A stretch of DNA of 64,000 bases from Dendrobates tinctorius (GCF_039654945.1 NW_027361730.1:1860001-1924000), one strand, 5' to 3'. Counted from the stretch's first letter, positions 34,842 through 61,669 are shown. The notes: a model not told the origin generated them from the letters alone. Translations and numbers: made by a program.

Positions 34842-35192
34842 TTGTCAACTTTGCGTCCTTAGATGTTGAAGGACAACTACATGAAGATGTTCTCCTTCCA
34901 TGTATTGTCATCTACAAGGATGAATTTGACTACAATTTGCTTGTAGTTCACTGGCAGCGACCAGAGAATGATGTTGTGGTCCATTCCTTCTATTATGACT
35001 CAAGCCAATCTGAATATCAATCAGATCAATATCGAGGTAGAACACAGATGTTTTATGATTTATTGCCCTCTGGTAATCTGTCATTGCTTCTCAGGAACCT
35101 CTCTGAATCAGATGCTGGGAGTTACACTTGTCAGAGTGTACTGCAAGAGACATCAGGGATCACCATTCAAGGTGTGAACCTTACACTAAAAG
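34842..35192 (+). CDS. IgV-TM-NLR gene, V-set Ig exon (B7/butyrophilin-like)
   Basis: cttttgccag| acceptor, G|GTAATA donor, phase 1-1. VLLPC, VHWQR, YRGRT and GNLSLLLRNLSESDAGSYTC are canonical B7-family IgV motifs; three N-glycosylation sequons. Confidence 0.93.
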
Positions 35193-37770
35193 GTAATATT
35201 TGTTTAATTATCTTTACAAAAAATAGTAGATTATATTGTATAGTTGTTAAGTCATCCATGGCTGTTTGGACAACATAGTGTCCTCTTACCTGGTTGAATT
35301 TGATGAACTTAAATCTATTTTTATCCAAACTGATATTTTTATTACGATGTTCAGTATACTATAAAACTGAGCTGGCAATATGATTCTCCAGGTTATAAGT
35401 AAGCAGATACAAAACATGTATAGTTTTTTTCATGTAAGTGGGGGGAAAATTTGGAAAAAATCAAAAAACGTTGCTTGTTTCGCCATTTTCTGAGACCCAT
35501 AACCCTTTCAAGTTTTGGGATATGGTGTTGTGTAAGTGTTTCTTTTTTGTGCCCTGAGCTGATGTTTTTACTGATAACATTTTGGGGTAGATAAAATGTT
35601 GCTAGCCTCTTATTGCATTGTTGCAGCAGCCAAATAATCATAATTCTGGGTTTTTTGATTTTTTTTTCTCATCCTTTTCTGATTGGATTAGTTTACTTTA
35701 TATTTTTATAAATTGTTTTATTTTTAACCCCTTACTGCCATTGGACATTATAGCACGGCAGTGAGCTCGCATCAAAGCAGGGATATGTCAGCTATTTTGA
35801 ACAGCTGACCATGTTCCCACAGTAGGTGCGAGTGGAATCGCGATCCACTTGCGCCTATTAACTAGTTAAATGCCGCTGTCAAACGCTGACAGCGGCATTT
35901 AATTTATCGCGCGCTTCCGGCTGTCATCAGTGCATCAGCATAACAATCAGAGGTCTCCTTGAGACCTCTATGGTTGTCAGTGCCAGATTGCTATGAGCAC
36001 CACCCTGTCATTCTGCTACATAGAGGCGATCTGAGCTTTGCCTCTATGTAGCAGAGCCGATCAAGCTATGGCAGCTTCTAGTCTCCCATGGAGGCTATTG
36101 AAGTATGCCAAAAGTAAAAAAAATGTTTTTAAAATATGAAAAAGTTTAAATCACCCCCCCTTTCGCCCCATTCAAAATAAAACAATAAAATAAAAATCAA
36201 ATATTAGGTATCGCCGTGTTCAGAATAAAAAAAAGGTTTAACCTGATCGCTAAACGGCGCAGCGAGAAAAAAATCGAAATGCCAGAATTAAGTTTTTTTG
36301 GTCACTGCATTAAAATACAATAACAGGCGATTAACCCCTTTCCTACATTAGATGTACTATTCCGTCCATGTGACCCAAGGACGGAATAGTACGTCTAATG
36401 CGATCAGCTGCGCTCATGGGGGTAGCGCAGCTGATCGCGGCCGGGTGTCAGCTGATTATCACAGCTGACACCCGGCACAATGTGTCAGGGGCGGTCACGA
36501 ACTGCCCCCGACACATTAACCCCTGGCACATCGCGATCAAACATGATCGCGGTGTATCGGGGGTTAAAGAAAGCATCGGCAGGGAGGGGGCTCCCTCCGT
36601 GCTTCCCTGCGACCCCCAAAGCAGCGCGATGTGCAGCGCCGCTGAGGGGGTCGCCTTCCCTGCAGGTCCCCGGATCCATTAAGGTGACGGGGACCTTCGG
36701 GGGCCTGCAGGGAGCTGGCTTCCTCACTGCCCGCAGAGCGCAGGCATGAGGAAGCCTGCAGCATTGCCTGTGACAGATCGCTGATCTGTCACAGTGATCT
36801 GTGATGTGACAGATCAGCGATCTGTCACAGGACAGTGATGTCCCCATGGGACATTATAATAAAGTAAAAAAAAAAAAAAAGTGTAAAAATAATTTAAACA
36901 AAAATCGCTAAATAAATTAACAGAAAAAAAAAATATTCCCTAATAAATTCATTTTTTGAAAGTAAAAAAACAATAAAAGTACACATATTTGGTATCGCCA
37001 CGTCAGTAATGACCCACCCTATAAATCTGTCCCATTAGTTAACCCCTTTAGCGAACCCCTTAAAAGATAAAAATAAAAAACGAAGCGAAAAATAATGATT
37101 TATTATCATACCGCCAAACAAAAAGTGCAATAACGCGCGGTCAAAAAGACGCATATAAATATCCTTGGTACCGCTGAAAACGTCATCTTGTCCCGCAAAA
37201 AACGAGTCACCACACAGCATCATCAGCGAAAAAATAAAGTTATAGCTCGCAGAATAAAGCGATGCAAAAATAATTATTTTTATATAATATTGTTTTCATT
37301 GCATGAAACCACCAAAACATAAAAAAAATGAAATAAATGAGGTATCGCTGTAACCATACTGACCCGAAGAATAAAACCACTTTATCAATTTTACCGCACG
37401 CGGAACGGTGTAAACGCACCCCCAAAAGAAATTCATGAAACTCTGGTTTTTGTTCATTCTGCATCCCAAAAATCGGAATAAAAAGCGATCAAAAAATGTC
37501 ACGTGCCCGAAAATGGTACCAATAAAAACGTCAACTCGTCCCGCAAAAAATAAGACCTCACATGAGTCGGTGGATCAAAATATGGAAAAATTATAGCTCT
37601 CAAAATGTGGTGATGCATAAACTATTTTTACAATAAAAAGCGCCTTTTAGCGTTTGACAGCTGCCAAATATAAAAACCGCCATAAATAGTAAATCAAACC
37701 CCCCGTTATCACCCCCTTAGTTAGGGAAAATAATAAAATAATTTTTTTTTTATTTATTTCCATTTTCCCA

Positions 37771-37860
37771 TTAGGGCTAGAGTTAGGGTTAGGGCTAGAG
37801 TTAGGGTTAGGGCTAGGGTCAGAGCTAGGGTTAGGGCTAGGGTTAGGGTTGGAGTTAGAA
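37771..37860 (+). repeat. Degenerate telomere-like (TTAGGG/CTAGGG/CTAGAG)n tract inside the piggyBac derivative
   Basis: About 15 hexamers, several exact TTAGGG. Confidence 0.85.
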
Positions 37861-39036
37861 TTGGGGGGTTTCCACTGTTTTGGCACATCAGGGGCTCTCC
37901 AAATGCAACATGGCGTCCGATCTCAATTCCAGCCAAAAAAGTTAAATGGCGTTGCTTCCCTTCCGAGCTCTGCCATGTTCCCAAATAGTGGTTTACCCCC
38001 ATATATGGGGTATCAGCATACTCAGGACAAATTGCACAATAACTTGGGGTCCTGTTACTCTTGGGAAAATAAAAATTTGGGGTGAAAAGATCATTTTTGT
38101 GGAAAAAATATGATTTTCTTTATCGCCTTATTGGGGGACACAGAATACCATGGGTGTATGCTGCTGCTGCTAGGAGGCTGACACTATGCAAAAACAAGAA
38201 AATTAGCTCCTCCCCGGCAGTATACACCCACCGACAGGCACCAAGCACCTCAGTTTGTGCTTAGTGTCTGTAGGAGGCGGACCGGGGTCTCCCCAGATCC
38301 GCAGCTTTAATACAATTTTCCTTTCAGGTTTAGTTTGAACTTTTTAATTTTCTCCCTCTTTTGTCTTTTAGGTTTTTTCCATTGGGAAACAGGGTATAAG
38401 TTATCACCCTGATTTCCTATATCATGCGGCTGAGCGAGCAGTGTGGTGTCACCCACATCGCACCTCTCAGTACCGCAGGCAGGACTTTTCCCTATCACCA
38501 TCTGGTGATAAGGGTTGCGGACAGGTGGCTGGTCCTTGCCGAATCCCCCTCCTCACCCCTTTCTCGGGACAGGGCTGAGAGGAAGACGGCGATCGTAGGT
38601 GTTCTAAGAAAGCCGTCTTCTGCAGGATGCGGGTACAGAGGACTCCTTCCCCTCCCAGCGGCCTGCCGTTTCCCCGTGAGCCCCTGTGTTCATCCTCTTC
38701 AGGGACGTCAGGTAAGTGCCTGTACATTCCCTCCGGCCCCGCATAAGCTTCAGTGACATGGGAGAAGAAGGGACCTTGTTGGTTTCAGGTCCACAGATTT
38801 GAATCTCCCGCCCTTCTCTGCCTGCCGCGCGCTCAGCCGCTTGCGTTCCTCCACTTTCCCTGCTCTAGTCGGGGAGTCTATGGGGATCTCCTCACTCACC
38901 GCAGCGTCACAAGCAGCAGGACCTGGTCAGATTGCATCCTTAGCGCGGTATGTAACGACTTCGAAAAAGTCGCTTACCAATCTGCCATTCCATGGTTGTA
39001 GGCTCTTTGGAGCAAAGCTGGATCAGATAATTTCCG

Positions 39037-41180
39037 ATGCCATTGGAGGTAAAAGTACTTCGCTTCCCCAATCTCGACCAAAACGTCCTTTCAACAGAAG
39101 TGGTTTTCGACCATTCAGGCCCTTTCGTCCCTTCTCTGCCACGGAGAGAGCCACTCAACAGGATCGGCCGCCCGCCACCAGGGAGCGGGATCAGAGGAAA
39201 CCTTCCTACAAACCCACTCCTCGCTGGAGATCTAGAGGACAATATTCCAGATCTGCAGGAGCCAATTCCGGCAGATTTTCGTCTAAGTGACGGGTCACCC
39301 CCACCTGGAATTTCTTCCAGGGTGGGAGGCAGACTTTCCTTTTTCGCGGATGCTTGGCTGTCCGTTGTCGACGACGCTTGGGTCAGAGAACTCGTCGCAT
39401 CCGGATACAAGATCGAATTTGCTTCACTCCCGAACAGACGGTTTTTCCAGTCTCGGCCTCCGCGACAGCGGGCCCAGCTTCCGGGTTTTCTGCAGGTCAT
39501 TTCCTCCCTTCTTTCCGCCGGAGTCATTGTTCCCGTTCCCTCAGACGAACGGTTTTCCGGGTTCTACTCCAATCTCTTTGTAGTCCCGAAGAAAGACGGC
39601 TCTCTTCGTCCTATTCTGGACCTCAAATTGCTCAATCGCCACGTGAAGATTCTTCACTTCAGGATGGAGTCTCTTCGGTCGGTGATTGCTTCCATGGAGC
39701 CCGGGGAATTTCTCTGCTCTGTGGACATTCGGGATGCCTATCTGCACATTCCAATTTGTGTGCAACATCAGAAGTATCTTCGATTTGCGTTTCAGGGAGA
39801 CCACTTTCAGTTCACAGCTCTCCCTTTCGGCCTAGCTTCAGCGCCCCGTGTTTTCACGAAGGTGATGGCGACCGTCATGGCCATCCTTCGCTCTAGAGGG
39901 ATCCTCATCATCCCTTATCTGGACGATCTTTTGATCAAGGGTTCGTCTCGCCAGGACTGTCTCCGGAGCCTTCAGATAACCCTGGACACTCTCAGCCGCC
40001 TAGGTTGGCTGGTCAACAAGGAGAAGTCCATTCTGATCCCCACCCAGCGTCTGACCTTTCTGGGTATGGAATTCGACACGAAGCTAGCCCGTGTTTTTCT
40101 TCCAAGGGAAAAATGTACAACTCTGTCCAAGGGCATCAGAACTCTCAAGAGGCCTGTTCCTATTCCCATTCGGTTCTGCATGAAGGTCCTGGGGAAGATG
40201 GTGGCCTCCATGGAAGCAGTACCCTTTGCGCAGTTTCATCTTCGCCCCCTCCAGCTGTCTCTGCTTTCAGCCTGGGACAAGACCACGATGTCCTTGGACC
40301 GTCCTATTCGGCTTCCTCTCAGAGTGAGGCAGTCTCTCACTTGGTGGTTACGGCCAGCGTCAGTTCTCCAAGGGAGGTCCTTCCTTCCGCCTCAGTGGCA
40401 AGTCATCACCACCGATGCGAGCCTTCTAGGATGGGGAGCCGTGTTCCATCAGAAAGCGGCCCAAGGCCGCTGGAAGCCACAGGAGTCTCTCCTCCCAATC
40501 AATCTTTTGGAGATCAGAGCAATTTTCCTGGCCCTTCTTCATTGGCAGCCCCTCCTCTCCGGCAAGCCGGTCCGTATTCAGTCGGACAACGCCACGGCCG
40601 TGGCGTACATAAACCATCAGGGGGGCACGCGCAGCAAACAAGTAATGTCAGAAGTGGCCAAGATATTCCGCTGGGCAGAACGTTACGTTCCGACAATCTC
40701 CGCCGTCCATATTCCAGGGGTGGAAAATTGGGCAGCCGACTTTCTGAGTCGCCAGGGCCTAGCGTCCGGCGAATGGTCCCTGCACCCCGCAGTTTTCTCT
40801 CAGATATGCGACCGTTGGGGCACCCCGGATGTCGATCTCATGGCATCTCGGATGAACCACAAGGTGCCACAGTTCGTAGCCAGGTCCAGGGACCCTCTAG
40901 CGACGCACTGGTGACTCCGTGGTCCCAGTTTCAACTTCCGTATCTGTTCCCGCCTCTGGCATTGATCCCTCGAGTGGTCAAATAGATAAAATCGGAAGGC
41001 GTACCAGTGATTCTAGTCGCTCCAGATTGGCCAAGACGGCCTTGGTACGCGGAACTGGTCAACATGCTCGCGGACGTTCCCTGGAGGCTTCCAGACCGTC
41101 CAGATCTTCTCTCGCAAGGCCCCCTTTACCACGAGAATTCTCAGTCTCTGAGTTTGACGGCATGGCCGTTGAGACCGCAA
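39037..41180 (+). pseudogene. DIRS RT-RNase H-MT ORF, frameshifted near 40900 with a stop at 40983
   Basis: ORF 39037-40914 continues in another frame as DALVTPWSQFQLPYLFPP...VVK*IKSEGVPVILVAPDWPRRPW. Confidence 0.85.
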
Positions 41181-42211
41181 TTCTGAAGGAATCAGGTCTG
41201 TCCAGTCAGGTTATTCAAACTATGATCAGAGCCAGGAAACCAGCCTCTTCTCGCATTTACTATAGGTACTGGAAGGCTTTTTTCCGTTGGTGCGACGATA
41301 AAAGAGTGTTCCCAATGTCTTTTTCTATCCCATCTATCCTGGGGTTTCTTCAGTCTGGGTTAGACGCGGGTCTGTCCCTCAGTACGCTCAAGGGCCAGGT
41401 TTCCGCTCTCTCTATCCTCTTCCAAAGAGAGCTGGCTTCTCTACCACAGGTCAAAACCTTTCTGCAAGGGGTTTCCCACGTGGCTCCTCCTCATCATTTG
41501 CCAATAGACCCGTGGGATCTCAACCTCGTCCTTAGCGCTCTCCAGAAGGCGCCGTTCGAGCCTCTCCAGGACATTCCTTTGTCCCTTCTCTCTTGGAAGG
41601 TCACCTTTTTGATCGCCATCTCATCCATCAGAAGAGTTTCTGAATTGGCGGCCTTGTCATGTCGTTCCCCTTACCTCATTCTCCATCAGGACAAAGCCGT
41701 CCTCAGGCCCGTTCCTTCTTTTCTTCCAAAGGTGGTTTCCGCTTTCCATATCAATGAGGATATCGTCCTTCCTTCTTTTTGTCCGGCTCCATCTCATCCT
41801 CTTGAGAAGTCTCTCCACAAACTGGACGTAGTTAGAGCCCTGCGTGTCTATCTCGCCAGGACTTCTTCCTTTCGTCTGTCCGATTCCTTGCTGATCATCT
41901 CTGAAGGTCGCCAGAAGGGCCTTCCGGCTTCCAAATCCACGATCGCTCGCTGGATTCGTTCTACCATTCTGGAAGCGTATCGTCTTCAGGAAAAGCGGCC
42001 CCCTCCGGGAGTAAGAGCTCATTCCACCCGGGCTGTGGCGGCTTCGTGGGCTGCTCGTCACCAGGCCTCGGCCATGCAAATTTGCAAGGCTGCAACCTGG
42101 TCATCTTTGCACACCTTCACGAGGTTCTACAAGGTTCATACCCAGGCCTCGTCTGATGCTGTGGTTGGTAGGAAGGTTCTGCAGGCGGCGGTGGCTCACC
42201 GGCCGACCTAA
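40919..42211 (+). CDS. DIRS tyrosine recombinase (catalytic domain intact, N-terminal overlap region frameshifted)
   Basis: SIRRVSEL, AHSTRA and ATWSSLHTFTRFY catalytic motifs. Confidence 0.85.
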   Translation: MVPVSTSVSVPASGIDPSSGQIDKIGRRTSDSSRSRLAKTALVRGTGQHARGRSLEASRPSRSSLARPPLPREFSVSEFDGMAVETAILKESGLSSQVIQTMIRARKPASSRIYYRYWKAFFRWCDDKRVFPMSFSIPSILGFLQSGLDAGLSLSTLKGQVSALSILFQRELASLPQVKTFLQGVSHVAPPHHLPIDPWDLNLVLSALQKAPFEPLQDIPLSLLSWKVTFLIAISSIRRVSELAALSCRSPYLILHQDKAVLRPVPSFLPKVVSAFHINEDIVLPSFCPAPSHPLEKSLHKLDVVRALRVYLARTSSFRLSDSLLIISEGRQKGLPASKSTIARWIRSTILEAYRLQEKRPPPGVRAHSTRAVAASWAARHQASAMQICKAATWSSLHTFTRFYKVHTQASSDAVVGRKVLQAAVAHRPT

Positions 42212-44553
42212 GCCTTTCAGTTTCTTTCGTTCCTTATTGCTGTTCCCACCCTTGGGACTGCTTTGGGACGTCCCATGGTATTCTGTGTCCCCCAATAAGG
42301 CGATAAAGAAAGATGGATTTTTGGTTCTTACCGTAAAATCTCTTTCTTGGAGCCTTCATTGGGGGACACAGCACCCTCCCTGTTTAAGTTGTACCGTGTT
42401 GGGTCTTAGAGTCCCTTGTTGGGTTGGTACATATGGTTCGAGTTTTTTCTCGTTGCTTCTCCTACTGCTTTTTCACCAACTGAGGTGCTTGGTGCCTGTC
42501 GGTGGGTGTATACTGCCGGGGAGGAGCTAATTTTCTTGTTTTTGCATAGTGTCAGCCTCCTAGCAGCAGCAGCATACACCCATGGTATTCTGTGTCCCCC
42601 CAATGAAGGCTCCAAGAAAGAGATTTTACGGTAAGAACCAAAAATCCATCTTTTTTTAATTGTACGGCTGTACGTTATAAACTTCTGTGAAGCCCTTGTG
42701 GGTTCAAAGTGCTCACCACATATCTAGATAAGTTCCTTGGGGGGTCTAGTTTCTAAAATGGGGTCACTTGTGGGGGGTTTCCACTGTTTAGGTACATCAG
42801 GGGCTCTCCAAACGTGGCATGGCGTCCAATCTGAATTCCAGCCAATTTTGCAGAGAAAAAGTCAAACGACGCTCCTTCCCTTCCGAGCTCTGCCTTGTGC
42901 CCAAACAGTGGTTCCCCCCACATATCAGGTATCGGCGTACTCAGGACAAATTGCACAATAACTTTTCCAGTCCAATTTCTCCTGTTACCCTTGGTAAAAT
43001 AAAAAAATTGAACCTGAAGTAATTTTTTTTGTGAAAAAAAGTTAAATGTTCATTTTTTTTTTTAAACATTCAAAAAATTCCTGTGAAGCACCTGAAGGGT
43101 TAATAAACTTCTTGAATGTGGTTTTGAACACCTTGAGGGGTGCAGTTTTTAGAATGGTGTCACTTTTGGGTATTTTCTATCATATAGACCCCTCAAAGTG
43201 ACTTCAAATGTGATATGGTCCCTAAAAATAAAATGGTGTTGTAAAAATGAGAAATCGCTGGTCAACTTTTAACCCTTATAACTTCCTAACAAAAAAAATT
43301 TGGGTTCCCAAATTGTGCCAATGTAAAGTAAACATGGGGGAAATGTTATTTATTAAGTTTTTTGAGTGCCATATCTCTGTGATTTAAGAGCATAAAAATT
43401 AAAAGTTGGAAAATTGTGACATTTTCAAAATTTTCTCCAAATTTCCATTTTTTTCACAAATAAATGCAAGTTATATGAATGAAATTTTACCTCTAACATG
43501 AAGTTGTCCAATATGTCACGAGAAAACAGACAATGTCATAATCACCGGGATCCATGGAAGCGTTTCAGAGTTATTACCTCATAAAGGGACAGTGGTCAAA
43601 ATTGTAAAAATTGGCCCGGGAATTAACATGCAAACCATCCTTGGGAGTAAAGGGGTTAAAAGATCGTATCTGCACAAAAGTGGTATAATTAAAAACGTCA
43701 GCTCAGCGCGCAAAAAATAAGCCCCCCACCCGACCTGAGCTAATGAAAAATGGAGACTTGGAAAATGGGGGAATGGGGTCTCGGAAAATGGATTTTTTTT
43801 TTAGCAAACTTTGGAATTGTTTTTCACCACTAAGATAAAAAAGAACCTAGCCATGTTTGGTGTCTGTGAACTCGTTATGACCTGGAGAATCATAGTGGCA
43901 GCTCAGTTTTAGCACTTAATGAACCTAGCAAAAAAGCCAAAGAAAAAAACAGTGTGGGATTGCGCTTTTTTTTGCAATTTCACCGCACTTGGAATTTTTT
44001 CCTGTTTTTGAGTACACAACATGGTAAAACCAAAAGTACAACTCGTCCCGCAAAAAATAAGCCCTTACATGGCCATATTGACGTAAAAATAAAAAAGTTA
44101 TGGCTCTGGGAAGAAGGGGAGCGAAAAATGAAAACGCATTAACGGTCATTAAGGGGTTAATGGGTGCAAAGGAGTGGGTATTTGAACTTTTATGTTTTTT
44201 AAATTCTTTTCATATTCGTAAAAACATTTCTTTTCACTTTTTATTGTATATATTAATCCCTTTAGGGGACTTGAAGCAGTGATCGTACGATCACTTGTAC
44301 TATACATAGCAGTGCATCATCATTTCTATGTATAGTGAAGATCACAATCTCTTATGAACGTCAGCTACAGGCTGACATTCACAGAGGAATTGTCATGACA
44401 TGCATGGACGTCCTCAGCAGACCTCTGGTTGTCATAGCAATCCATTGGTACTCTGTGATCACGACACGGGAGTGCCAGTAGGCGCATGGAATGGCATGCC
44501 TCCCTGCCATCGCGTGTTAATGAGCACTGTCAGAGACTGACAGTGGCATTTTA

Positions 44554-45697: not shown

Positions 45698-45742
<45 letters not shown>

Positions 45743-46052: not shown

Positions 46053-46199
46053 GAAGAAGTGAGGGCCAAATTCCAACGACTGGAGACACACTCCGAAAAC
46101 GTACTTTGAGCATTACCAACACCGTTGCTGTTTGCATTTTGGACTTGTGTCTCTTTTGCTTTCTAATTAAACTAAATAGAAAACGAAATAATGATGAAG
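46053..46199 (+). CDS. IgV-TM-NLR gene, stalk plus transmembrane exon
   Basis: tctgtcttaaag| acceptor, G|GTAGGT donor, 147 nt, phase 1-1, open: GRSEGQIPTTGDTLRKRTLSITNTVAVCILDLCLFCFLIKLNRKRNNDE; a hydrophobic stretch followed by a basic KLNRKR stop-transfer cluster. Absent from the ORF track. Confidence 0.8.
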
Positions 46200-47982
46200 G
46201 TAGGTGGAGTCATTGAGATCAAACTTGCTGCATAAATAAAAGCTGCTGCTTAGTTGCTCATTTTCATTAAGGGTTAAATTGTGTATTTTCCGATCTGGTT
46301 TAGATTTTATATACTTTTATTTTGGGCTAAAAATTGCCATTATGTTGATGATCATGACAAAAAAATTCCAATAACAAATGTGTCATCGTGTTATCGGAAG
46401 AGTATGGTAGCAGTACATTGAGATATTGAGGAAGGGATTCTGAGAGATCTAGAATTCAGATAGCGTGTTGTACTTCTGTCTTTTTGTGTTTGGAGCGAAG
46501 TTGTAACAACATTATGGTAAAGCCATCGCAAGGGGAAACGCTGCCTCCCCTAATCCACCATCAACCAGTGCCCTACTCTGCACACGTGAGGTGTTAGGGG
46601 GCAAGAGTTTGTGTGTGGGGTGGAAGGCGAGAGTACAGTTGCTATATTTATTACTTCATGAAGGATCACATGTTTGATCACAGTAATGAAGATGGGAGAA
46701 ACTGGGAGCTCACCTACAGCTTCATAACAAGTACAGTATGTACAGAATAGTGGGCTGAGGGTGAAGGTGCAGGGCTCCAGTTTTTAACACATGACGGACA
46801 TGGAACTGGTAGAGGGTATACACTGATAAAAAAAAAAAAAACATGATACAGATATCATTGTTGTCATATTGTATATAATGCTATTTCTCATGTACACACA
46901 TTTTGATTCTCTCTCATGAAGTTAAAAAGCTATTCTTACCTTGTGAATTCATAACATATGTCTAGGATATGCGATCACTTTATATCGATCCCACGAGGCC
47001 TTAGGATAAGATCTCTTTAAGACGTCCGTTTATTGCATACAATGCTATCTGTGCTTTTCAGGGATAACATTTGGACCTATAATAATGAATGGGGCTGTTC
47101 ACATTTTCATTATTTTTCAAGAACCGAGCCAATTCGCGGAGACATGTCCAATATTGATCTCAGTGTTGGATTAATATTGGCAGTGCATGTCTATGGATCC
47201 ATGAAAAAAATTGGACAGCACTCAGATGTCAACCAAATGTGGACTGATGTTCATGGACTGTTACATATGAGAAACTTTTTTTTCACCTACAAGAAAAACT
47301 GATGAGTATCAGACTAAACTCTGATGAAACTTGGACCAAACCCTGACCAAAGTCACTCGGTCTATTTTTCTCGTGAAAATAACTGAAACCCGAATGAGGC
47401 CTTAGGGAGCACAGTGCTAGTTAAGCTCTGTATTCCCTGCATTGCTTTCTTCCTATAGTGATTCATCCCCAGGGTAGGTGCACACTACTCTTTTCTCTCC
47501 ATCCGAGAAAAACGGTCTGACTATGCTAATCAGATTCCGATCAGAGTTTGATCAGAGTGGGATCCATATTTCTTGGAGGTGGAGATAAACAAAAATTGGT
47601 TCTCCACCTTCTACATTCAGTTAGTTTGTGAAAATTGGACCACACTTGGGATGTCATCCTTGGGTGATCTGATGTTGTCCGCAGACCCATAGACTTGCAT
47701 TGCCAATTTTGATCTTACACTCAATTCAAAATCAGACATGTTACCAATTGGACATGTTCACAGCTCCATAGAATAACATGGATACAAGTATTATCAATCA
47801 AAACCATGGATAGCACTTGTCCAACTTAAATGGTCATGTGCACGAGCACTTAAGGACATAAGTGGCAAGTTTTTTTCTCTCCGTTGCCATGAGTGTTCCA
47901 AATTTTATTTTAATTACAAATCTGTCATATAATTCCAGGGATATGGGTCTTTTTACTTAGTGCTAATTTTTATGGTTTTTAG

Positions 47983-50224: not shown

Positions 50225-50650
50225 GTATCTAACTGTATTTTGCAGATATTTTAATTTTTGAACCATATTTAACCCCTTCCCGACATCTGCCATACATGTA
50301 TGGCGCAGGTTGGGAGCGGGTGTATGGAGTGGGCTCACAGGTCGATCTCGCACCATAAGCGGGATATAATAGCTGCATATCACAGCTCTGAGTCTAACAG
50401 TAGCAGGATGGAGCCTAGCACCCACGACTGTTAACCTGATAAATGCTGCTATCAGTCTCTGACAGCAGCATTAAAAACTCACTCTTATCAAAGTTTATTT
50501 TAGAAAATACATATATTTGTTGTAAAATAACAATTATGCAGCATTATCTCTTAGAACTCTGCATTTTTCTAGTCCTCTTGAATTCCTCCTAGAAATATAT
50601 GAATAAATTGAAGGAGTTGCCACTACTCTGACAACCCCCTCTCACGGTAA

Positions 50651-51046
50651 AGGTACTGTCACACTTAGCGATGTACCAGCGATCCTGACCAGCGATATGA
50701 CGCGGTCAGGATCGCTGGTACATCGCTAAGTGGTCGCTAGTGAGCTGCCACACAGGCAGATCTCACCAGCGACATCGCTGGGGACGGGGATCGCTACTTA
50801 CATGTCACAACAGGCGATCCTGCGTCCTCCCGCCCGGCTCCACGCGTCGCTCGTCCTCACAGCAGGAAGCGCCGCAGGAAGCAGACGACGAGAAACAGTC
50901 CTGAACGTTCTCGCGCGATCAGCGATAACCAGCGGGGGAGCCGGTCGTAGGTAAGTATCACACATAGCGATATCGCTAGCAATATCGCTATAACGTCACT
51001 AGTTATAGCGATATTGCTAGCGATATCTCTTAGTGTGACATGCCCT
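50651..51046. mobile_element. Harbinger-like MITE, AGCGAT-rich family (duplicate at 54903-55298)
   Basis: TAA TSD; homologous to the copies at 14219 and 34242. Confidence 0.8.
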
Positions 51047-54000
51047 TAACAGTTCACCAAGCAACTGATCTACTCTGCTCGACTTTTTGATAATTTGTGC
51101 ATTATTTGCTCCATATCTTTCAGGTAAAAAAAAATCCTGGTTATGCAACACTTAGGGAAATAGTTGAACTGATTAGAATCCTTCAGCTGTCTAATCTCTT
51201 TTCTTCAACCTTCATCTCAGGTTTAGTGTTCTGCTGGGCCCTGAACTTTTATAATAGGTGGTTATTGTGTCATTAGGGTTTGTGGTTACATTGATGGAAA
51301 TAAGCCAAATGAAGAATGAAAATAATGTAGTGCCAGAGCACCATAGCAGAATATATGCTTTTCAAAGCTATCATGCAAACTGTCTCTTCAGACACGAAGA
51401 GGACTTGAACTCTAGTGAAACCTATAGGAAGTAGCAATTCTAAAAGTCAATAACGACTCTCCGTCCTAAGCCGAATGTATGGACATGTAGGTCATAAGAA
51501 GCTAAATAAAATATTATCTGTGATCAGATGCCTTATTCAAGTGAGATCAACGTTTTCTTATATGTACTGTAAATGAAATGTTAAAGCAGGCTTGCACAAT
51601 ATATGACCCCCCATAGGATGTTGTGCTGCCTGCAGACAACCAGGAGACTCCAGTTCTCATTTTCCCATGTTCAACTGTATTTGCATCCTTCAAGAATTGT
51701 AAAATGGCACAGTAGCAAAGGAGCAGTGTGGGGGATAATTTGGAGAGGGGCAGTTTGGCAGGGTATATTATGGAGATGGGCAGAGACTGGGGTATATTAT
51801 GGAGAGGAGTGGTGTGGGGATATATTATGAAGAGGGGCAGTGTGGGGGGATATTATACAGGGGGCAGTGTAGTGAGATATTATAGAGAGGAGCAGTGTGG
51901 TGGGGATGTTATTTTTCAGGAAACAGAGTGAGGAGCAATAGACTTGCATTGCCAATTTTGATCTTACACTCAATTCAAAATCAGACATGTTACCAATTGG
52001 ACATGTTCACAGCTCCATAGAATAACATGGATACAAGTATTATCAATCAAAACCATGGATAGCACTTGTCCAACTTAAATGGTCATGTGCACGAGCACTT
52101 AAGGACATAAGTGGCAAGTTTTTTTCTCTCCGTTGCCATGAGTGTTCCAAATTTTATTTTAATTACAAATCTGTCATATAATTCCAGGGATATGGGTCTT
52201 TTTACTTAGTGCTAATTTTTATGGTTTTTAGCCCCTTACTGCCATTGGACGCAATAGTACATCTAATGGCAGTACCCCTGCTTTGATGAGGGCTCCGGCA
52301 GTAAGCCGGCATCAAAGCCGGGACATGTCAGCTGTTTTCAACAGCTGACATATGCCCGCAATAGGTGCAGGTGGAATCGCAATCCACCCGCGCCTATTAA
52401 CTAGTTAAATCCCACTGTCAAATGCGGGATTTAACCTGCGCTTCCGGTCGCCGGGCCAGAAATACGCGCATCACCAACCTCCATCACATGATCTGGGGTC
52501 AGCGATGCGTTGCCATAACAACCTGAGGTCTCCTAGAGACCTCTATGGTTGTTGATGAGGCATTGCTATGAGCGCCACCTGGTGGTCGGCCCTCAGAGCT
52601 ATGCTGTAATTCTGCTACATATAGTCGAACTGCTCATCGCCTATATGTAACAGAGCCGATCAAGTTGTGGATTCTTCTAACCTCCCAAGGAGGCTATTGA
52701 AGCATGGCAAAATTATTTAAAAAATGTTTTAAAAAAATATGAAAAAAATAAAAAAATATAAAAGTTTAAATCACCCCACTTTCGCCCCATTCAAAATAAA
52801 ACAATTAAAAAAAATCACACATACACATGTTAGGTATCGCCGCATTCAGAATCGCCCGATCTATCAATAAGAAAAAGGATGAACCTGATCGCTAAATGGC
52901 GTAGCGGGAAAAAAAATCGAAATGCCAGAATTACTTTTTTTGGTCACCGTGACATTGCATTAAAATACAATAATGGGTGTTCAAAAGATCGTATCTGCAC
53001 ATAAATGGTATCCTTAAAAATGTCAGCTCGGCGCGCAAAAAATAAGCCCTCACCCAACCACAGATCACATAAAATGGAGACGGGTATCGGAAAATGGCGC
53101 AATTTTTTAGCAAATTTGGAATTTTTTTCACCATTTAGATAAAAAAGAACCTAGACATGTTTGGTGACTATGAACTTGTAATGACCTGGCAAATCATAAT
53201 GGCGTGTCAGTTTTAGCATTTAGTAAACCTAGCAAAAAAAGCCAAACAAAAACAAGTGTGGGATTGCACTTTTTGCAATTTCACCGCACTTGGAATTTTT
53301 TTCCCGTTTTTGAGTACACTACATACTAAAACCAATGATGTCGTTCAAAAGTACAACTCGTCCCGCAAAAAATAAGCCCTCACATGGCCATATTGACGGA
53401 AAAATAAAAAAGTTATGGCTCTTGGAACTAGGGGAGCGAAAAGCAAAAGCCGAAAAAAGCTCTGTTCATTAAGGGGTTAAAAAGTGGGTGGTGCTCACTA
53501 CATACTAAGCACTAAATAAAGAGTGACATATCTCTGGAATCTTAGGGTGTATTTATAAAAAAGCTTAAAAAAATGGAATACTAAGGGGAGCAGCGGGAAT
53601 AAAATAGGAGCAAAAACTGGGCACTGTTGACCTGATGACAGGTCCTCTAAGAGGATGGACCTCGGTGCATTTCCCTGCTGTCAGCTGGCCAGGACCAATG
53701 TGCTTTGATTTCAAATGGGAATAACATGTGCAGCTGTAATTCTTGCACTGTCTCATACAAGGGACATTTTGACTAAGGCCGGTTTCACATTTGCAATTAA
53801 GACCGCAGCGTCGGCCTGCGCACGGCCACCGCTAAGCCCTGCCCCCTGTCGCGCCTCCGCCGGTAGCTCCGCCTCCGGGTGCATGACACTGCATGCGTCA
53901 TGCGTCCCCTATCTTTATCACTGAGGACGCAGACCGTGCGCAGTATGCGTTTGGCGGCGCCTGCGTCCTTTTGACGGCGCGCCGAGCTCCACCAAATTGC

Positions 54001-54440
54001 AACAGGTTGCGTTTGGCGCTGGTTGGCGCACCGTCAAAAGGACGCAGGCGCCGCCAAAACGCATACTGTGCACGGCCTGCGTCCTTAGTGATAGGGGATG
54101 CATGACGCATGCAGCGTCATGCGCCCGGAGGCGAGCTACCGGAGGAGGCGCGGCAGGGGGCGGGGCTTAGCGGCGGCCGTGCGCAGGCCGACGCTGCGGC
54201 CTTAAACGCAAATGTGAAACCGGCCTAAGTCAGTTAAGTTCTCGCTATGGTTTTGGCATTTGAGAAAATAGCAAAGTGGTAGCATTCTACAGGCAAATGT
54301 TAATGATAACAAGAAGTATATGGTAAGTTGGGAAATTAATAATTTTTTTTGTGTGAAGAACAGTAATACAGTATTCCATTGTTACACAATATACGGTAGA
54401 TCATTGTTTGTAACAAGATGTACTTGTCTTTTTCTTGCAG

Positions 54441-54473
54441 AAAATACGGCCCTCATTGATGCAAAGTCGCAAG
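54441..54473 (+). CDS. IgV-TM-NLR gene, 33-nt linker exon, copy 2 (ENTALIDAKSQ)
   Basis: Same splice sites as copy 1; CCG to ACG (Pro to Thr) difference. Confidence 0.65.
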
Positions 54474-56444
54474 GTATCTAACTGTATTTTGCAGATATTT
54501 TAATTTTTGAACCATATTTAACCCCTTCCCGACATCTGCCATACATGTATGGCGCAGGTTGGGAGCGGGTGTATGGAGTGGGCTCACAGGTCGATCTCGC
54601 ACCATAAGCGGGATATAATAGCTGCATATCACAGCTCTGAGTCTAACAGTAGCAGGATGGAGCCTAGCTCCACCCACGACTGTTAACCTGATAAATGCTG
54701 CTATCAGTCTCTGACAGCAGCATTAAAAACTCACTCTTATCAAAGTTTATTTTAGAAAATACATATATTTGTTGTAAAATAACAATTATGCAGCATTATC
54801 TCTTAGAACTCTGCATTTTTCTAGTCCTCTTGAATTCCTCCTAGAAATATATGAATAAATTGAAGGAGTTGCCACTACTCTGACAACCCCCTCTCACGGT
54901 AAAGGTACTGTCACACTTAGCGATGTACCAGCGATCCCGACCAGCGATATGACGCGGTCAGGATCGCTGGTACATCGCTAAGTGGTCGCTAGTGAGCTGC
55001 CACACAGGCAGATCTCACCAGCGACATCGCTGGGGACGGGGATCGCTACTTACATGTCACAACAGGCGATCCTGCGTCCTCCCGCCCGGCTCCACGCGTC
55101 GCTCGTCCTCACAGCAGGAAGCGCCGCAGGAAGCAGACGACGAGAAACAGTCCTGAACGTTCTCGCGCGATCAGCGATAACCAGCGGGGGAGCCGGTCGT
55201 AGGTAAGTATCACACATAGCGATATCGCTAGCAATATCGCTATAACGTCACTAGTTATAGCGATATTGCTAGCGATATCTCTTAGTGTGACATGCCCTTA
55301 ACAGTTCACCAAGCAACTGATCTACTCTGCTCGACTTTTTGATAATTTGTGCATTATTTGCTCCATATCTTTCAGGTAAAAAAAAATCCTGGTTATGCAA
55401 CACTTAGGGAAATAGTTGAACTGATTAGAATCCTTCAGCTGTCTAATCTCTTTTCTTCAACCTTCATCTCAGGTTTAGTGTTCTGCTGGGCCCTGAACTT
55501 TTATAATAGGTGGTTATTGTGTCATTAGGGTTTGTGGTTACATTGATGGAAATAAGCCAAATGAAGAATGAAAATAATGTAGTGCCAGAGCACCATAGCA
55601 GAATATATGCTTTTCAAAGCTATCATGCAAACTGTCTCTTCAGACACGAAGAGGACTTGAACTCTAGTGAAACCTATAGGAAGTAGCAATTCTAAAAGTC
55701 AATAACGACTCTCCGTCCTAAGCCGAATGTATGGACATGTAGGTCATAAGAAGCTAAATAAAATATTATCTGTGATCAGATGCCTTATTCAAGTGAGATC
55801 AACGTTTTCTTATATGTACTGTAAATGAAATGTTAAAGCAGGCTTGCACAATATATGACCCCCCATAGGATGTTGTGCTGCCTGCAGACAACCAGGAGAC
55901 TCCAGTTCTCATTTTCCCATGTTCAACTGTATTTGCATCCTTCAAGAATTGTAAAATGGCACAGTAGCAAAGGAGCAGTGTGGGGGATAATTTGGAGAGG
56001 GGCAGTTTGGCAGGGTATATTATGGAGATGGGCAGAGACTGGGGTATATTATGGAGAGGAGTGGTGTGGGGATATATTATGAAGAGGGGCAGTGTGGGGG
56101 GATATTATACAGGGGGCAGTGTAGTGAGATATTATAGAGAGGAGCAGTGTGGTGGGGATGTTATTTTTCAGGAAACAGAGTGAGGAGCAATTATTTATTC
56201 AGTGGCACAGCATGGTATATATTTTTTATTCATGGGGCATTATAATGATACTTTTTATTTTTAAGTACTGCAGAAGGCCAGAGAAGAGGGAAGTCTGGAA
56301 AGATGAGCTCTAGGCGTAAAATCTCATAATTGTGTCTGTACTATGACAAAAGGATTGGAGACAAGAGATGGGAACAACTTCAATCAGAGAAGATGTCAAG
56401 TATAAGGTGCATGGATACAAATGTTTTTGTGATACTGGCTGATG

Positions 56445-56447
<3 letters not shown>

Positions 56448-56510
<63 letters not shown>
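56448..56510. repeat. (TA)n microsatellite
   Basis: About 31 TA units. Confidence 0.95.
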
Positions 56511-56513
<3 letters not shown>

Positions 56514-57095
56514 CTGACCTGAAATTGCAAATTATCATAGTACTAAACTTGGTGATGTACTCCTGTACTTACAGTGTTTCTGGTGATGTATTCATGTACT
56601 GACAGTGGTTTTGGGAATATATTCATGTACTGTTGGTGGTCCTAGTGATGGATTCATGTACCGATGGTGGTTCTGGTGATTGTATTTGTGTCCTGTTGGT
56701 GGTTCTAGCACTGCATCCATGTACTGACGGTGGTTGTGATCATGTAGCAATCCATAATGTGCTTCATGCTAAAACTGAAAAATCATCAAAACTTAATTTT
56801 GAGATTAAGAGGAGGATTTGGTTGAGTTTCCACTTAGTTTCTGCTCCAAAAACTCGATGTATTTTTGGGTGTGTTCAAACTGAGCATTTTGGAGCAGAAA
56901 CTCTCCAAATCCTTCTAAAATACTCAAAAATTTGTTCTAATGATGTATTAGTTCTGATGATGTATTAATGTACTGACGGTGGTTATGGTGATATATTCAT
57001 GTAAACACCCCTTTAGATTATTTTGCAGCCTTTTGGATTGGTTCAATATGAAAATGTGGGCCTTGGACCAAAAAATGTTGTTCACCCCTGTGTTA

Positions 57096-57473
57096 GGGTG
57101 TGTGCACATGCTGCGGAATCTGCTGCGGATTCATCCGCGCGGATTTTGCAAAATCCGCAGAAAAATCCGCAGGTCAAAAGACCTGCGGTTTATCTGCAGA
57201 TTAGCTTGGGGTTTTGCCCTGCGGTTTATCATCTCCACAATGGAGGAGATGGTAAACCGCTGCGGAATCTGCAGAAAGAATTGACATGCAATTCTTTCTG
57301 CGGATTTGAAACCGCAGCAAAATCCGCGCGGAAAATTCCGCAACGTTTGCACAGCGGTTTTTAATTCCCATAGGGAATAATGGTACTATACACCGCAGCT
57401 AATTCTGCTGCGGATCCGCAGGGCCAAATCCGCTGCGAATCTGCAGCAGAATCCACTTCGTGTGCACATACCC
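57096..57473. mobile_element. Harbinger-like MITE
   Basis: GGGTGTGTGCACA ... TGTGCACATACCC, TTA TSD. Confidence 0.8.
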
Positions 57474-58124
57474 TTAAAGACAATGGGCAAAACACATCTC
57501 CCTGAGAATCTTCAGAACTTAATTTTTTTTAAAAAGGGGAAGTTACCAGTGTGAGACATGTAACTAACACAGAACAGTAAAACTGAGCTTTGTCTTCTTA
57601 CAAACACATTTACTGCAGCACTGCTGTGTTACGACAATATTGTAACCCTGCCTGGCTGTGAGATGGAAGCTGAAGCACTGAGATCTCTCCAGTGAGATCA
57701 GTAAGAGTAGTAAGCAGCCATAACAAATCATACAGGTAACTCCCCCTTTTATTTAAAATAAGCTCTGGAGTTAGATTCTCATGCAGATCAGTGTCCGACC
57801 CATAACCTGGAACAGCTCATTTACATACATAAAAAAACTGGATTCCTCTAGAATAAGACATCAGACCACAAATATCAAGGTATCATTTTATTAACTTCCT
57901 ATCACCTACATGACGATATAGATGGCTTAGGAGGGTTGATCCTCCTAACAGATTCCCTTTAAATACAGCCTTGTTATCTATGATTGAGACAGAGCAGAAC
58001 TGGCTATGGCATGCAGATATCTTTTGAGCACATTATGGTAAATGTATTATTTACTTTAAGTTCAAGCATTCATGCAAAAATATTATATGTAATGGACCCA
58101 TAAGTGTGTTCCAGAATTACTCTA

Positions 58125-58397
58125 GATGTAAGATATTTGCCCACACCTGTCCATGAAATAGCCTTGGAGTCAATTGTCCAATTACTTTTGGTCCCTTTAA
58201 AAGCAGGGTGGCACATGTTAAGGAGCTGAAACTCCTAAACCCTTCATCCAATTTTAATGTGGATACCCTCAAATGAAAGCTGAAAGTCTGAACTACAACT
58301 GCATCTGAATTGTTTTGTTTAAAATTCATTGTGGTAATGTCTAGAACCAAAATTAGAAAAATGTTGTCTCTGTCCAAATATATATGGACCTAACTGT
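58125..58397. mobile_element. Terminal fragment of a second Tc1-like family
   Basis: Ends ...GTCCAAATATATATGGACCTAACTG-TA, a CAGT-type Tc1 TIR. Confidence 0.65.
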
Positions 58398-58400
58398 ATA

Positions 58401-59954
58401 CACTGCTCCAAAAAATAAGGGGAACACCACATCCTAGATATCATTGAATGAAATATTTCAGTTTTAAATATTTATTCATTACATAGTGGAATGTGTTGAG
58501 AACAATAAAACTTAAACATGATCAATGTAAATCAAAATATCCCATGTAGGTCTGGATTTGGAATGATACTCAAAATCAAGTGCAAAATCATTTTACAGGC
58601 TGATCATTGGAAATGCCTCAAGACAAGGAAATGATGCTCAGTAGTGTGTGTAGCCTCCACGTGCCTGTATGACCTCCCTACAACGCCTGTGCATTCCCCT
58701 GATGAGGTAGCGGATATTCTTCTGTGGGATCTCCTTCCAAACCTTGATTAAAGCATCAGTCAACTCGTGGCCAGTCTGTGGTGCAACGTGGAGGATGGAA
58801 TGAGACATGATGTCCCACATATGCTCGATTGAATTCAGGCCTGGTGAATGGGCAGGCAAGTCCATAGCATCAATGGCTTTATCATGCAGGAACTGCTGAC
58901 ACACTTCAGCCACATGAAGCCTAGCATTGTCATACATCAGAAGGAACCCAGGGCCCACTGCACCTGCACATGGTCTCACAATGGGTCTGAGGATCTCATC
59001 ATAGTACCTTACGGCAGTGAGGGTACCTCTGGCTAGCACGTGGGGGGCTGTGCAGCACTCCAAAGAAATGCCTCCCCTCACCATTACTGACCCATTGCCA
59101 AACCGGTCATGCTGAAGGATGATGCAGGCAGCAGAACGTTTTCCACAGCGTCTCCAAACTCTGTCATGTCTGTCACATGTGCTCAGTGTGAACCTGCTCT
59201 CATCCATGAATGGCACAGGGGCACAGGACGCCAATGTTGAATTTGCCAATCTTGATATTCCCTGACAAATGGCAATAGCCTGCACAGTGTTGGGCTGTAA
59301 GCACAACACCCACTTGTGGATTCGGGCCCTCGTGCCACCTTCATGGAGTCTGTTTGTGACAGTTGGAGCAGAATCATGAACGTTGGTGGCCTGCTGGAGG
59401 TCATTTTGCAGGGCTCTGGCACCGCTCCTCCTGTTCCTCCTTGCACAAAGGGGAAGGTAGCAGTCCTGCTGCTGGATTGTTGCCCTCCTATGGCCTCCTC
59501 CACATCTCCTGGTTTACTGGCCTGTCTCCTGGTATCTGCTCCATGCTCTGGACACTATGCTGACAGACACAGCTACCCTTGTTGCCACAGCTCACATTGA
59601 TGTACCATCCTCGATGAGCTGCACTACCTGAGCAACTTCTGTGGGTTGTGGACACTGCCTCATGCTACAGTACCTCTAGGAGAGAGAGCAATGACAAAAC
59701 CAACAGCCAAAAAGGGAAAAGAAAAGAGAAATGGTCTGTAGTACCTGAAGAACCACTCCTTTATAGGGGTTGTCTTGCTAATTGCTTATCATTTCTACCT
59801 GTCATCTGTTCCATTTGCACAACAGCAGGAGAAATCGATTCACAATCAGTGTTGCTTCATAACTGGACATGCTGATTTCACAGAAGTGTGATTGACTTGG
59901 AGTTAATTTGTGTTGTTTAGTTGTTTAAGTGTTCCCTTTATTTTTTGAGCAGTG
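58401..59954 (-). mobile_element. Tc1/mariner transposon, full-length and decayed
   Basis: TA-CACTGCTC(C/A)AAAAAATAA(G/A)GGGAACAC TIRs at both ends; ORF 58638-59309 has FMDES, MYDNA and LNSIEHMW (DD34E remnants), frameshifted upstream. Confidence 0.92.
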
Positions 59955-60123
59955 TACATGATCAAAGTGAAGGGGTGGGAAAGAATAAAGTATTTGATGT
60001 TGTCTAGCGAGTTGATGATATTCATAATGTGACTATTGAGCAATCTCTCCACTTATTGTACTGTGTATATGTGTGCCTCATTTTAAACATGATCTTCTAA
60101 ACCTTTTCTTTGTCATTTTATAG

Positions 60124-61669
60124 AATCTATAATACAACATTATAAAAAAAGTGTGGCCTACATTATGCAACATAAAGATTATTCTCTATCACAAAGACAT
60201 TTACTTGTGAAAAAATGTAGTTTTCTTGAATCTTCTGGAAAAATGAAAGCATATACAGAGGACAAGTCTGAGACTATAAATGCAGAAGAACTTTTTACAC
60301 CGGAAAAGCAGCAGCTTATATCCAGAAGAATGTGTTTACTGGGGGATGCCGGGAGTGGAAAAAGCTATTTCTGTAAATGGCTTCAAACTGAATGGATACA
60401 AGAAAAACTTACAATGTATAAATGTATTGTATACCTACCCAGCAAAAAATTCAAGAATAACATGAGCCTGGAGGCTGTATGTGATGAAACATATTCTAAC
60501 CTTTCTTCAGTTCTCAGCATGGATAATATCCTGCTCATTTTTGATGGACTTGATGACCTTGTGTGTGAAAACAGAAACTCAGACTCAACTCAGAAGAGTG
60601 AAATAACTAATTGCTCTTTAAATATGTACCCCTTGTTGGAAAAAATCATGAAAAAAATACTTGTGCCTGACATGGATGTCTTAATTGTATGTCGCAATGA
60701 CTCTTTGATTGACTTACAGAAGGAATGCAACTCAGCTTTTATTCTTCTAGACTTTACTGAGCAAGAGACTGAGAATGTCTATAATACAATTACTGTAAAA
60801 GAGCAAAAATCAGACAAGAGATGTAAAAAAATATCAGATATCACACACATGCCTGCTTTTGTTGTAATGATGAGTCATTTCAGCAATAACCACCATCTGG
60901 AAACAATCAGAGATTCTAGTCCATATACGATTCTTACTGATATTTTGTTGGAGTGGACTACAAATGTCATAGGAGAAAGAATAAAGCAGAATATTTTTAT
61001 AAATATGGCAAGTCAATCATATGTAAACCTTATTAAAGGTGAGCCAAACAGCACAGAGACTATAGAGTCCTGGGACACATTTCTGAAATTTTATAACTGC
61101 CAAGAGCAAAGTAAGTACCAGCGCAATATTCTGAGAGACATGTTGGCAGCTGCACACTGCGTATGGGAAATACACCGTACAGGAGGCTTAAAAGAGTGCC
61201 TGAATTTCTGGGTGTTTGGAAGCAATATACATAGGAATACTGAGTTGCTAAAATCTGTTGCAGATGAGCACAATGCAAAATATTATCACTTCATAAGATT
61301 CTTCATGAGACTTCTCAATTATCCAGATTGTGAGAGTCTGTGTAATAATATGCCCATGAAGAACAGTTGTATGGAAGACTTACTTTCAGACTGGTTCAAG
61401 GAGAACATTTGCAAATGTAGACCTTCTGAAAAGCTGAAACTCCTCCATTGCATTTTTGAACTTCATGATGAGATGATGACAATAGAAGTTCTGTCAAACT
61501 TGAAAAAGTTAGAGCTCTTTAACACCCCTCTGAACTTTAAAGATATCCAGGCCTTGGATTACTGCTTCAAAGACATTGAATTGGAAGAACTGGACTTGAG
61601 GCTTTGTGCTCTTGAGGACAAAAGTGTTAAACGACTCAGAAGTGTGATTAAGAACACCAAAAATGTTAT
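60124..61669 (+). CDS. IgV-TM-NLR gene, NACHT exon (NBD-HD1-WHD-HD2 and first LRR)
   Basis: tgtcattttatag| phase-1 acceptor in frame with ORF 60153; Walker A GDAGSGKS, Walker B LLIFDGLDDL, sensor-1-like LIVCR, HD2 motifs FIRFFMRLL and LLHCIFEL, LRR LEELDLRLCAL; donor AT|GTAAGC, phase 2. Confidence 0.93.

Follow-up and report, generated by a model that had tools for sequence, protein, structure and literature searches.

Proteins of the NLR family are usually seen as soluble sensors of the cytosol, and those of the B7 family as short-tailed ligands of the cell surface. STAND NTPases have their output domain N-terminal and their sensor C-terminal, and the immunoglobulin variable (IgV) domains of B7 proteins act as ligands in trans. 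Here we describe a gene of Dendrobates tinctorius in which one polypeptide is both, with an IgV domain and a transmembrane (TM) segment standing in front of a NACHT domain and leucine-rich repeats (LRRs), and for which we tentatively favour signalling from the inside out, from the NACHT towards the IgV (probability roughly 0.4). The gene lies across a 64-kb stretch of one strand of contig C62 (C62:1860001-1924000, in a 6.36-Gb assembly), called the window below; exon coordinates above 64000 continue its numbering past its end.

Several described systems share a part of this layout. Butyrophilins have phase-1 Ig and TM exons and short cytoplasmic exons as well, and BTN3A1 combines a B7-family IgV outside, one TM segment and a cytosolic ligand-sensing domain, which makes it a precedent for inside-out signalling; they differ in having an IgC and a B30.2 domain, neither of which occurs here, and the IgV scores about 60 bits against BTN3A1, below its scores against B7-H3 and B7-H4. 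These last two are type I membrane proteins with the closest IgV sequences among solved structures, sharing motifs at the C′, D and F strands and the GN(A/L)S sequon, though B7 proteins consist of IgV plus IgC with short tails, whereas here a single IgV is joined to a cytosolic NLR of about 650 residues. The NLRs nearest to the family in both of our trees have the order CARD-NACHT-LRR-tail (automatically named NLRC3-like; Spea P0133, Alosa P0137) and a NOD-type NACHT too, but have a CARD (Spea) or no recognised N-domain (Alosa) instead of signal peptide, IgV and TM, and are presumably soluble. In NLRX1 seven LRRs are followed by an uncharacterised three-helix bundle (PMC6797603), an arrangement also found here behind the NACHT, and the N-terminus is likewise a membrane or organelle targeting device rather than a CARD or PYD, although it is a mitochondrial targeting sequence and not a signal peptide-IgV-TM module. 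Finally, AjNLRC4 of the sea cucumber Apostichopus japonicus (Ig, TM and NACHT) binds microbes through its Ig, dimerises, is internalised and drives phagocytosis (PMC8699970; PMC13133943). It resembles the frog protein in having an Ig outside, a TM and a NACHT in one membrane protein; it differs in its two TM segments, the absence of LRRs and tail, and the binding of microbes by its Ig, and may be convergent. No description of a vertebrate Ig-TM-NLR was found by full-text literature searches or in the NLR surveys consulted, a search whose coverage left out most subscription journals, and the echinoderm protein was the only precedent that came up. The family may thus be an NLR with a new N-terminal module and a possible invertebrate parallel, perhaps already described elsewhere.

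A single expressed gene runs across the window on the plus strand, made up of a leader, a B7-type IgV, a TM exon, two micro-exons, a NACHT exon, LRR exons and a distal last exon. The NCBI model P0001 (876 residues), retrieved by a word search with the large open reading frame at 60153-61673, maps exactly and at 100% identity onto the exons of the window and their downstream continuation, and all exons listed here have AG/GT borders. The annotated start codon (19237) lies in an exon at 19216-19290 that encodes a conserved 18-residue N-region (P0001 residues 1-18), and the leader exon at 28348-28426 (residues 19-44) adds a basic stretch and a hydrophobic signal core and ends in phase 1. The IgV exon (34842-35192, 351 nt; Pfam V-set, 2.5e-11) is followed by the stalk and TM exon (46053-46199, 147 nt, residues 163-210), which was recognised by a hydrophobicity scan and leads into basic stop-transfer residues, and by two 33-nt micro-exons at 50192-50224 and 54441-54473, mapped by P0001, all four being symmetric in phase 1 (1-1). 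The central exon (60124-61669, 1546 nt) opens in phase 1 without a start codon and encodes a pre-NACHT segment, the NACHT NTPase, HD1/WHD, HD2 and the first LRRs (Pfam NACHT 4.8e-15, NLRC4_HD2 7.9e-10). Behind it come an 87-nt LRR exon in phase 2-2 (62751-62837, residues 749-777), found also in Callorhinchus and Bufo, an optional 168-nt LRR exon that straddles the end of the window (63954-64121) and the last exon, 16 kb past that end (79897-80197, placed by P0001). The optional exon has an open frame and 56 matching residues in orthologues, where it is present; it is skipped in isoform X2, an NCBI model. An earlier, sequence-only reading of this DNA had proposed the order leader, IgV, TM, micro-exon and large exon; all of these are present in one reading frame, but it had one micro-exon where there are two, took the NACHT exon as terminal, and gave 34842 as its start coordinate, downstream of the leader. 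The NCBI name of the model, NLRP1, is an automatic misnomer, and PYD, FIIND and a C-terminal CARD are absent from P0001 (Pfam, E up to 0.1).

Since introns of 10.9 kb (IgV to TM) and 14 kb (TM to NACHT), both filled with transposable elements, separate the two halves, a separate B7-like IgV-TM gene and an NLR gene might have been fused by gene prediction. We looked for the joint in four RNA runs of one study that hold every sampled word of the NACHT exon, which were taken to be of the window's own species and compared with 54400-60399. RNA contigs of 1.9-3.2 kb in all four contain the GT..AG joint from 54473 to 60124, splicing the second micro-exon to a NACHT exon that, as said, has no start codon of its own. 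The same four runs contain a joint that goes back by 33 nt, so both micro-exons are present in the mRNA. In run X15 the NACHT exon begins at position 854 of its contig, and the 853 nt before it, known by their length and not by their sequence, fit 697 nt of upstream coding sequence plus 156 nt of 5′ untranslated region (UTR). Elsewhere, an independent annotation of Engystomops joins TM, micro-exon and NACHT, an uninterrupted 3266-nt RNA contig of another frog (SRR5149468) encodes in a single open frame a 917-residue orthologue from the IgV through the tail, and the same architecture recurs in about 30 species. A fusion artefact is thereby close to refuted, and the placing of an IgV-TM module N-terminal to an NLR in one mRNA, as read from the sequence at the outset, is borne out by the NCBI model, the spliced contigs and the whole-protein contig of the other frog.

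By profile and by modelled fold the IgV is a member of the B7 family, and in sequence it is closest to B7-H3 and B7-H4 and not to the butyrophilins. A structure predicted from the IgV exon and 20 orthologues has a mean predicted local distance difference test score (pLDDT) of 92, and its 50 best Foldseek neighbours are without exception B7/butyrophilin-family IgVs (PD-L1, B7-H4, B7-H3, BTN3A1, ICOS-L and MOG), with TM-scores of 0.76-0.87 that are nearly all at least 0.80. Searched against solved structures, the IgV profile gives 143 bits for CD276 over the two IgV domains of human 4Ig-B7-H3, 78.3 for mouse single-IgV CD276, 79.7 for VTCN1, 72 for MXRA8, 69 for MOG, 64 for PD-L1 and 61 for BTN3A1; a search with the single sequence likewise ranks CD276 and VTCN1 best. 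The disulphide cysteines are invariant among orthologues, and 19 of 20 sequences retain the N123 sequon. Domain scans gave no match to a second Ig (IgC) in any family protein examined, and the IgV exon directly precedes the stalk and TM in frog, toad and chimaera. A grouping of the IgV outside B7/BTN, the outcome that would have told against the sequence-only reading, was thus found neither by profile nor by fold; its picture of a butyrophilin scaffold with a NACHT in place of B30.2 fares less well, given scores about 20 bits higher against B7-H3/B7-H4 than against BTN3A1 and the lack of an IgC.

A hydrophobicity scan finds the leader and one internal TM segment, and both a sequon and disulphide cysteines are present in the IgV. 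We infer a type I membrane NLR, with a presumably glycosylated IgV that is extracellular or in an organelle lumen and the NLR in the cytosol. In basal members of the family (shark, newt and Bombina) the signal peptide is short and of the ordinary kind. The leader of the anuran clade (19237-19290 and 28348-28426) opens with an unusually long N-region of some 30 residues, which is conserved (52-93% identical among hyloid orthologues, less so in ranoids) and is followed by a short hydrophobic core; this leader might be an uncleaved signal anchor that would give a two-pass topology like that of AjNLRC4. Of all parts of the protein the TM exon is conserved least, and none of its polar residues is conserved; on these grounds we rejected TM helices as a pore-forming output in the manner of plant resistosomes.

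Past the TM segment, the micro-exon encodes an acidic dileucine motif, [DE]xxxL[LI], at a distance of 10-19 residues in 17 of the 24 family proteins in which both a TM segment and a Walker A could be located, shark and chimaera included. It reads ENPALI and ENTALI in the two copies of this gene, ERAALI in chimaera, EEMPLL in catshark, DEVKLL in caecilian, ELEPLL in Bombina and ENTPLL in Ascaphus. Acidic dileucine signals are read by the adaptors AP-1, AP-2 and AP-3, and similar ones are carried by LIMP-II, tyrosinase and Pmel17. The motif suggests that the protein is routed by clathrin adaptors into endocytic or endolysosomal traffic, and its presence makes plausible the conservation over more than 400 million years of so small an exon, 33 or 30 nt long in Callorhinchus and Bufo. 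The doubling of the micro-exon here is part of a tandem duplication of a 4.25-kb intronic unit (47689-56191, with copies at 47689-51939 and 51938-56191) that must be very young, the copies differing by 4 mismatches and 1 gap in 4254 nt (99.84% identity). The two micro-exons, both found in mRNA, differ by one base (Pro to Thr), and Ranitomeya and Phyllobates have a single copy.

Behind the membrane, Walker A (GxxGxGK) and the Walker B Asp do not vary among 14 orthologues, and a family profile of the NACHT matches NOD2 best among solved structures, followed by NLRP3; by this measure the NACHT is of the NOD/NLRC type. The winged-helix His, an ADP contact in other NLRs, aligns with the His of the NLRP3 ‘FIH’ motif (which we take to be His522). 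Shark, coelacanth, caecilian, newt and Bombina retain it, and all members of the anuran clade have Arg or Cys instead, in this gene Arg566 (61120-61122); the same clade has deletions in HD1/WHD. This His is a conserved trait of NLRs and not one that defines them.

The part from the end of HD2 to the C-terminus was modelled from an alignment of 15 orthologues with the complete Ranitomeya orthologue as first row, giving seven LRR strands and three C-terminal helices at a pLDDT of 94. Its best match among solved structures is the C-terminal fragment of NLRX1 (3UN9), with a Foldseek E-value of 4e-13 and, by VIA-align, a Z-score of 24.4 over 217 residues (model residues 11-265) that extends into the tail. 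Few structures align as far as the tail; 3UN9 ranks first among them, and NLRP14 and NLRP5 entries also pass residue 250 at lower Z. A sequence profile of the same part gives one continuous alignment with 3UN9 (positions 2-240 of 273). The LRRs also match those of RNH1 and NLRP1, the module is matched more closely by ESM Atlas clusters automatically named NLRP12 and NLRC3-like than by the NLRX1 cluster, and an ESM Atlas feature search with the C-terminal part returned generic LRR/NLR clusters only. We do not claim NLRX1 as a sister gene: PF21402 (NLRX1_C), at E up to 1, misses the tail of this locus and matches the frog's true NLRX1 on contig C18, and in a tree of the nucleotide-binding domain (NBD) only, which included the exon of this frog's NLRX1, the family is monophyletic (99) without NLRX1, which falls outside on a long branch. 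The likeness to NLRX1 is, on profiles, trees and models, one of module and fold and not of orthology.

No B30.2, FIIND, CARD, PYD or death domain was found by Pfam in P0001 and eleven relatives, which gave V-set, NACHT, NLRC4_HD2 and LRR-type matches only, and tblastn with two B30.2 queries and CARD queries found nothing in 124 kb (the window plus 60 kb downstream). The exons past 64000, for which B30.2, FIIND-CARD or death domains had been envisaged, contain LRRs and the three-helix tail only, and lend no support to the C-terminal effector suggested there.

These features raise the possibility that the IgV-TM and the dileucine motif merely place a modulatory NLR on endolysosomal or plasma membranes, where it would tune other pathways, the IgV signalling in neither direction. 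The C-terminal module, which with its seven LRRs and three-helix bundle is most like that of NLRX1 (PMC6797603), the targeting device in place of a death-fold domain, as in NLRX1, and the NOD/NLRC-type NACHT all speak for such a tether. Yet the family and NLRX1 are not sisters in the NBD tree, NLRX1_C misses the tail, and the pattern of conservation is not that of an anchor: against Mantella and Ascaphus, respectively, identity is 59% and 58% in the IgV, 54% and 50% in the LRRs, 40% and 40% in the NBD, 32% and 27% in HD1-WHD, and 10% and 12% in the TM exon. Judged by these identities, constraint is strongest on the IgV and the LRRs, and the TM does no more than anchor the protein; an IgV that did no more than hold the NLR in place would not need to be among the best-conserved parts; we therefore regard a mere tether as distinctly unlikely.

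Family members were sought by word and profile searches, cluster look-ups, and an exhaustive hidden Markov model search of 1.84 billion representatives. An architecture of V-set and NACHT was found in Callorhinchus, Scyliorhinus, Lepisosteus, Atractosteus, Protopterus, salamanders (with two paralogues), some twenty frogs and alligator, and was confirmed by Pfam in the species tested; Latimeria (partial models), Rhinatrema (an isoform with a TM) and a fragment from Chelydra belong to the family by sequence, with no IgV seen. Mammals, birds and squamates had no member among about 45 named clusters, which is suggestive only. Members score at least 500 bits against the family profile, as opposed to less than about 400 for true NLRC3, NLRP-like and teleost NLR-C proteins, and a tree of 38 proteins recovers the family as monophyletic (100 by the Shimodaira-Hasegawa-like approximate likelihood ratio test). 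Its tetrapod members fall into a slow clade of caecilian, crocodilian plus turtle, salamanders and a few frogs, and an anuran-only clade on a long stem to which the D. tinctorius gene belongs. Callorhinchus and Bufo share this exon plan (leader, IgV, TM, micro-exon, NACHT, 87-nt LRR, 168-nt LRR and tail exon), and with it the phase-1 IgV, TM and micro-exons and the phase-1 opening of the NACHT exon on which the sequence-only reading had drawn. The family is dated to the ancestor of jawed vertebrates. The percomorph models P0027, P0028, P0030 and P0032 contain several IgVs (35-42% identical to the family IgV), a TM, FISNA-NACHT-LRR and sometimes B30.2, and could be a teleost Ig-linked NLR counterpart or annotation fusions of adjacent genes.

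The nearest outgroups in both trees are unnamed fish and amphibian NLRs to which the family profile aligns through the tail positions, and among them P0133 has an N-terminal CARD and P0137 no recognised N-domain. Since the nearest NLRs carry a CARD at the same N-terminal position, the IgV-TM sits in the effector slot; the sequence-only reading had placed it there, and needs correcting in what was replaced, the comparison pointing to a CARD and not to B30.2. D. tinctorius has one copy: queried with either the gene's own NACHT exon or a clade-A NACHT (both with a stricter first pass), the genome gave this locus and distant NLRs only. The second-best family match in the genome is a 617-residue open NACHT exon of 26-28% identity (L026; G000:C28:39198358-39199854), probably this frog's member of the CARD-type sister group.

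In the mechanism that we favour, the C-terminal LRR and three-helix module would sense, or be released by, a cytosolic cue, and the NACHT would then oligomerise beneath the membrane and cluster the N-terminal IgV-TM, which would be the output. Once clustered, and possibly kept at the cell surface, the IgV would be recognised by a conserved partner, either in cis or on another cell. Because about 100 residues lie between the membrane and the P-loop, oligomerisation of the NACHT and clustering of the IgV-TM should be inseparable, a mechanical coupling that we infer from the domain order. We prefer the inside-out direction since STAND proteins have their output at the N-terminus, sister NLRs have a CARD at the same place, and no other output domain was found, and since the LRR and three-helix module has been retained and the IgV is conserved, single-copy and from a family of ligands. 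A single copy is also more in keeping with a conserved host partner than with a pathogen sensor that diversifies. This domain logic favours the direction only mildly.

Several points weigh against it. To our knowledge no receptor for the family's IgV has been reported. The dileucine signal suggests that much of the protein is intracellular, where the IgV would be invisible to lymphocytes. Regulation of the NACHT on the anuran branch, with its His lost and its deletions in HD1/WHD, may differ from that of the ancestral form. In D. tinctorius itself the link from IgV to NACHT is drawn from the length of an RNA contig, the NCBI model and orthologues. Lastly, AjNLRC4, the only Ig-TM-NACHT protein that has been studied, works from the outside in as a phagocytic receptor (PMC8699970).

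An outside-in receptor would have an extracellular or lumenal ligand, of microbial or host origin, clustering the IgV, perhaps after dileucine-driven uptake into endosomes or phagosomes, upon which the NACHT oligomer would recruit partners through the NACHT, the LRRs or the tail. The layout of a type I receptor, the conserved endocytic motif and possible interferon-type promoter sites agree with this, as does the experimental precedent of AjNLRC4 (PMC8699970; PMC13133943), although that protein is without LRRs and may be convergent. Such a receptor would, however, signal into the cytosol by no recognisable signalling domain, and would leave without a sensing role an LRR and three-helix module that has been kept for more than 400 million years. 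Moreover its IgV is conserved and single-copy rather than diversified, and B7-type IgVs are not known as binders of microbes. We consider this direction doubtful, and return to inside-out signalling as the preferred one. In a more specific form of it, which we think unlikely as a whole, the protein would be an ‘NLR-gated B7 ligand’ that the first jawed vertebrates already had and mammals have lost: a cytosolic cue, sensed by the LRR and three-helix module, would cause the NACHT to oligomerise, and the IgV would be clustered, and perhaps unmasked from dileucine-mediated endocytosis, so that infected or stressed cells would display their inner state to lymphocytes.

Whichever the direction, the design has persisted in lineages from chimaeras to amphibians and crocodilians, may connect the internal alarm of a cell with its surface, and is a branch missing from accounts of NLR evolution, a distinct family hidden by automatic naming (‘NLRP1 homolog’, ‘NLRC3-like’). 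Were the IgV the output, there would be a direct wire from innate cytosolic sensing to immune signalling between cells, which could hint at former roles of the orphan ligands B7-H3 and B7-H4; if it is the input, a vertebrate NLR would read the outside of the cell or the lumen of endosomes, a role otherwise held by TLRs.

The 5′ end of the gene may lie further upstream. The X15 contig has 135 nt more 5′ sequence than can be assigned to exons 2-7, and a putative first exon was placed at 10075-10209 (plus strand, 5′ end inferred), which ends in an ATG (10207-10209) before a GTGAGT donor and splices in frame onto 19216. Bufo and an RNA-derived frog orthologue have short N-terminal extensions that resemble what this exon would add. 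Two sites resembling interferon-stimulated response elements (ISRE) or IRF sites lie at 10122-10133 and 10149-10160 (plus strand), by the relaxed pattern RAANNGAAACTA. This pattern has 2 matches in 64 kb where 0.39 are expected, a count reached in 6 of 100 shuffles, and the strict ISRE consensus has none in the 64-kb window, so that the motif statistics are weak. If the additional 135 nt derive from 10075-10209, the sites sit in the 5′UTR and not upstream of the transcription start.

All 36 matches to alpha domains of class I of the major histocompatibility complex (MHC) fall on contigs C45, C135, C157 and C314 and none on the 41-Mb C62, so that, at the level of contigs, the synteny with MHC for which a check had been proposed is not seen. 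No neighbouring exons of B7, BTN, B30.2 or CARD type were found in the window and 60 kb downstream, and no called neighbours lie within 10 kb in Callorhinchus or Bufo.

The introns are rich in mobile elements. That between IgV and TM contains a DIRS-like retroelement on the plus strand (38133-42600), outside the gene product, with 127-nt terminal inverted repeats and open frames for reverse transcriptase/RNase H (RVT_1; 625 residues) and a phage-integrase-type tyrosine recombinase (430 residues); it looks recent, as the repeats are 99% complementary and the frames are long and open. Ty3/Gypsy-type pol fragments occupy 22711-26666 (plus strand) in the intron after the start-codon exon, and a Tc1/mariner DDE_3 fragment 58638-59309 (minus strand) in the intron before the NACHT exon. 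Upstream, at 5273-6760 on the minus strand, lies an unbroken frame for a 495-residue piggyBac-type transposase (DDE_Tnp_1_7, E 3.7e-87), and 44 kb past the window a tandem array of repeats of about 124 nt contains a repeating open frame (L008; C62:1968382-1970200).

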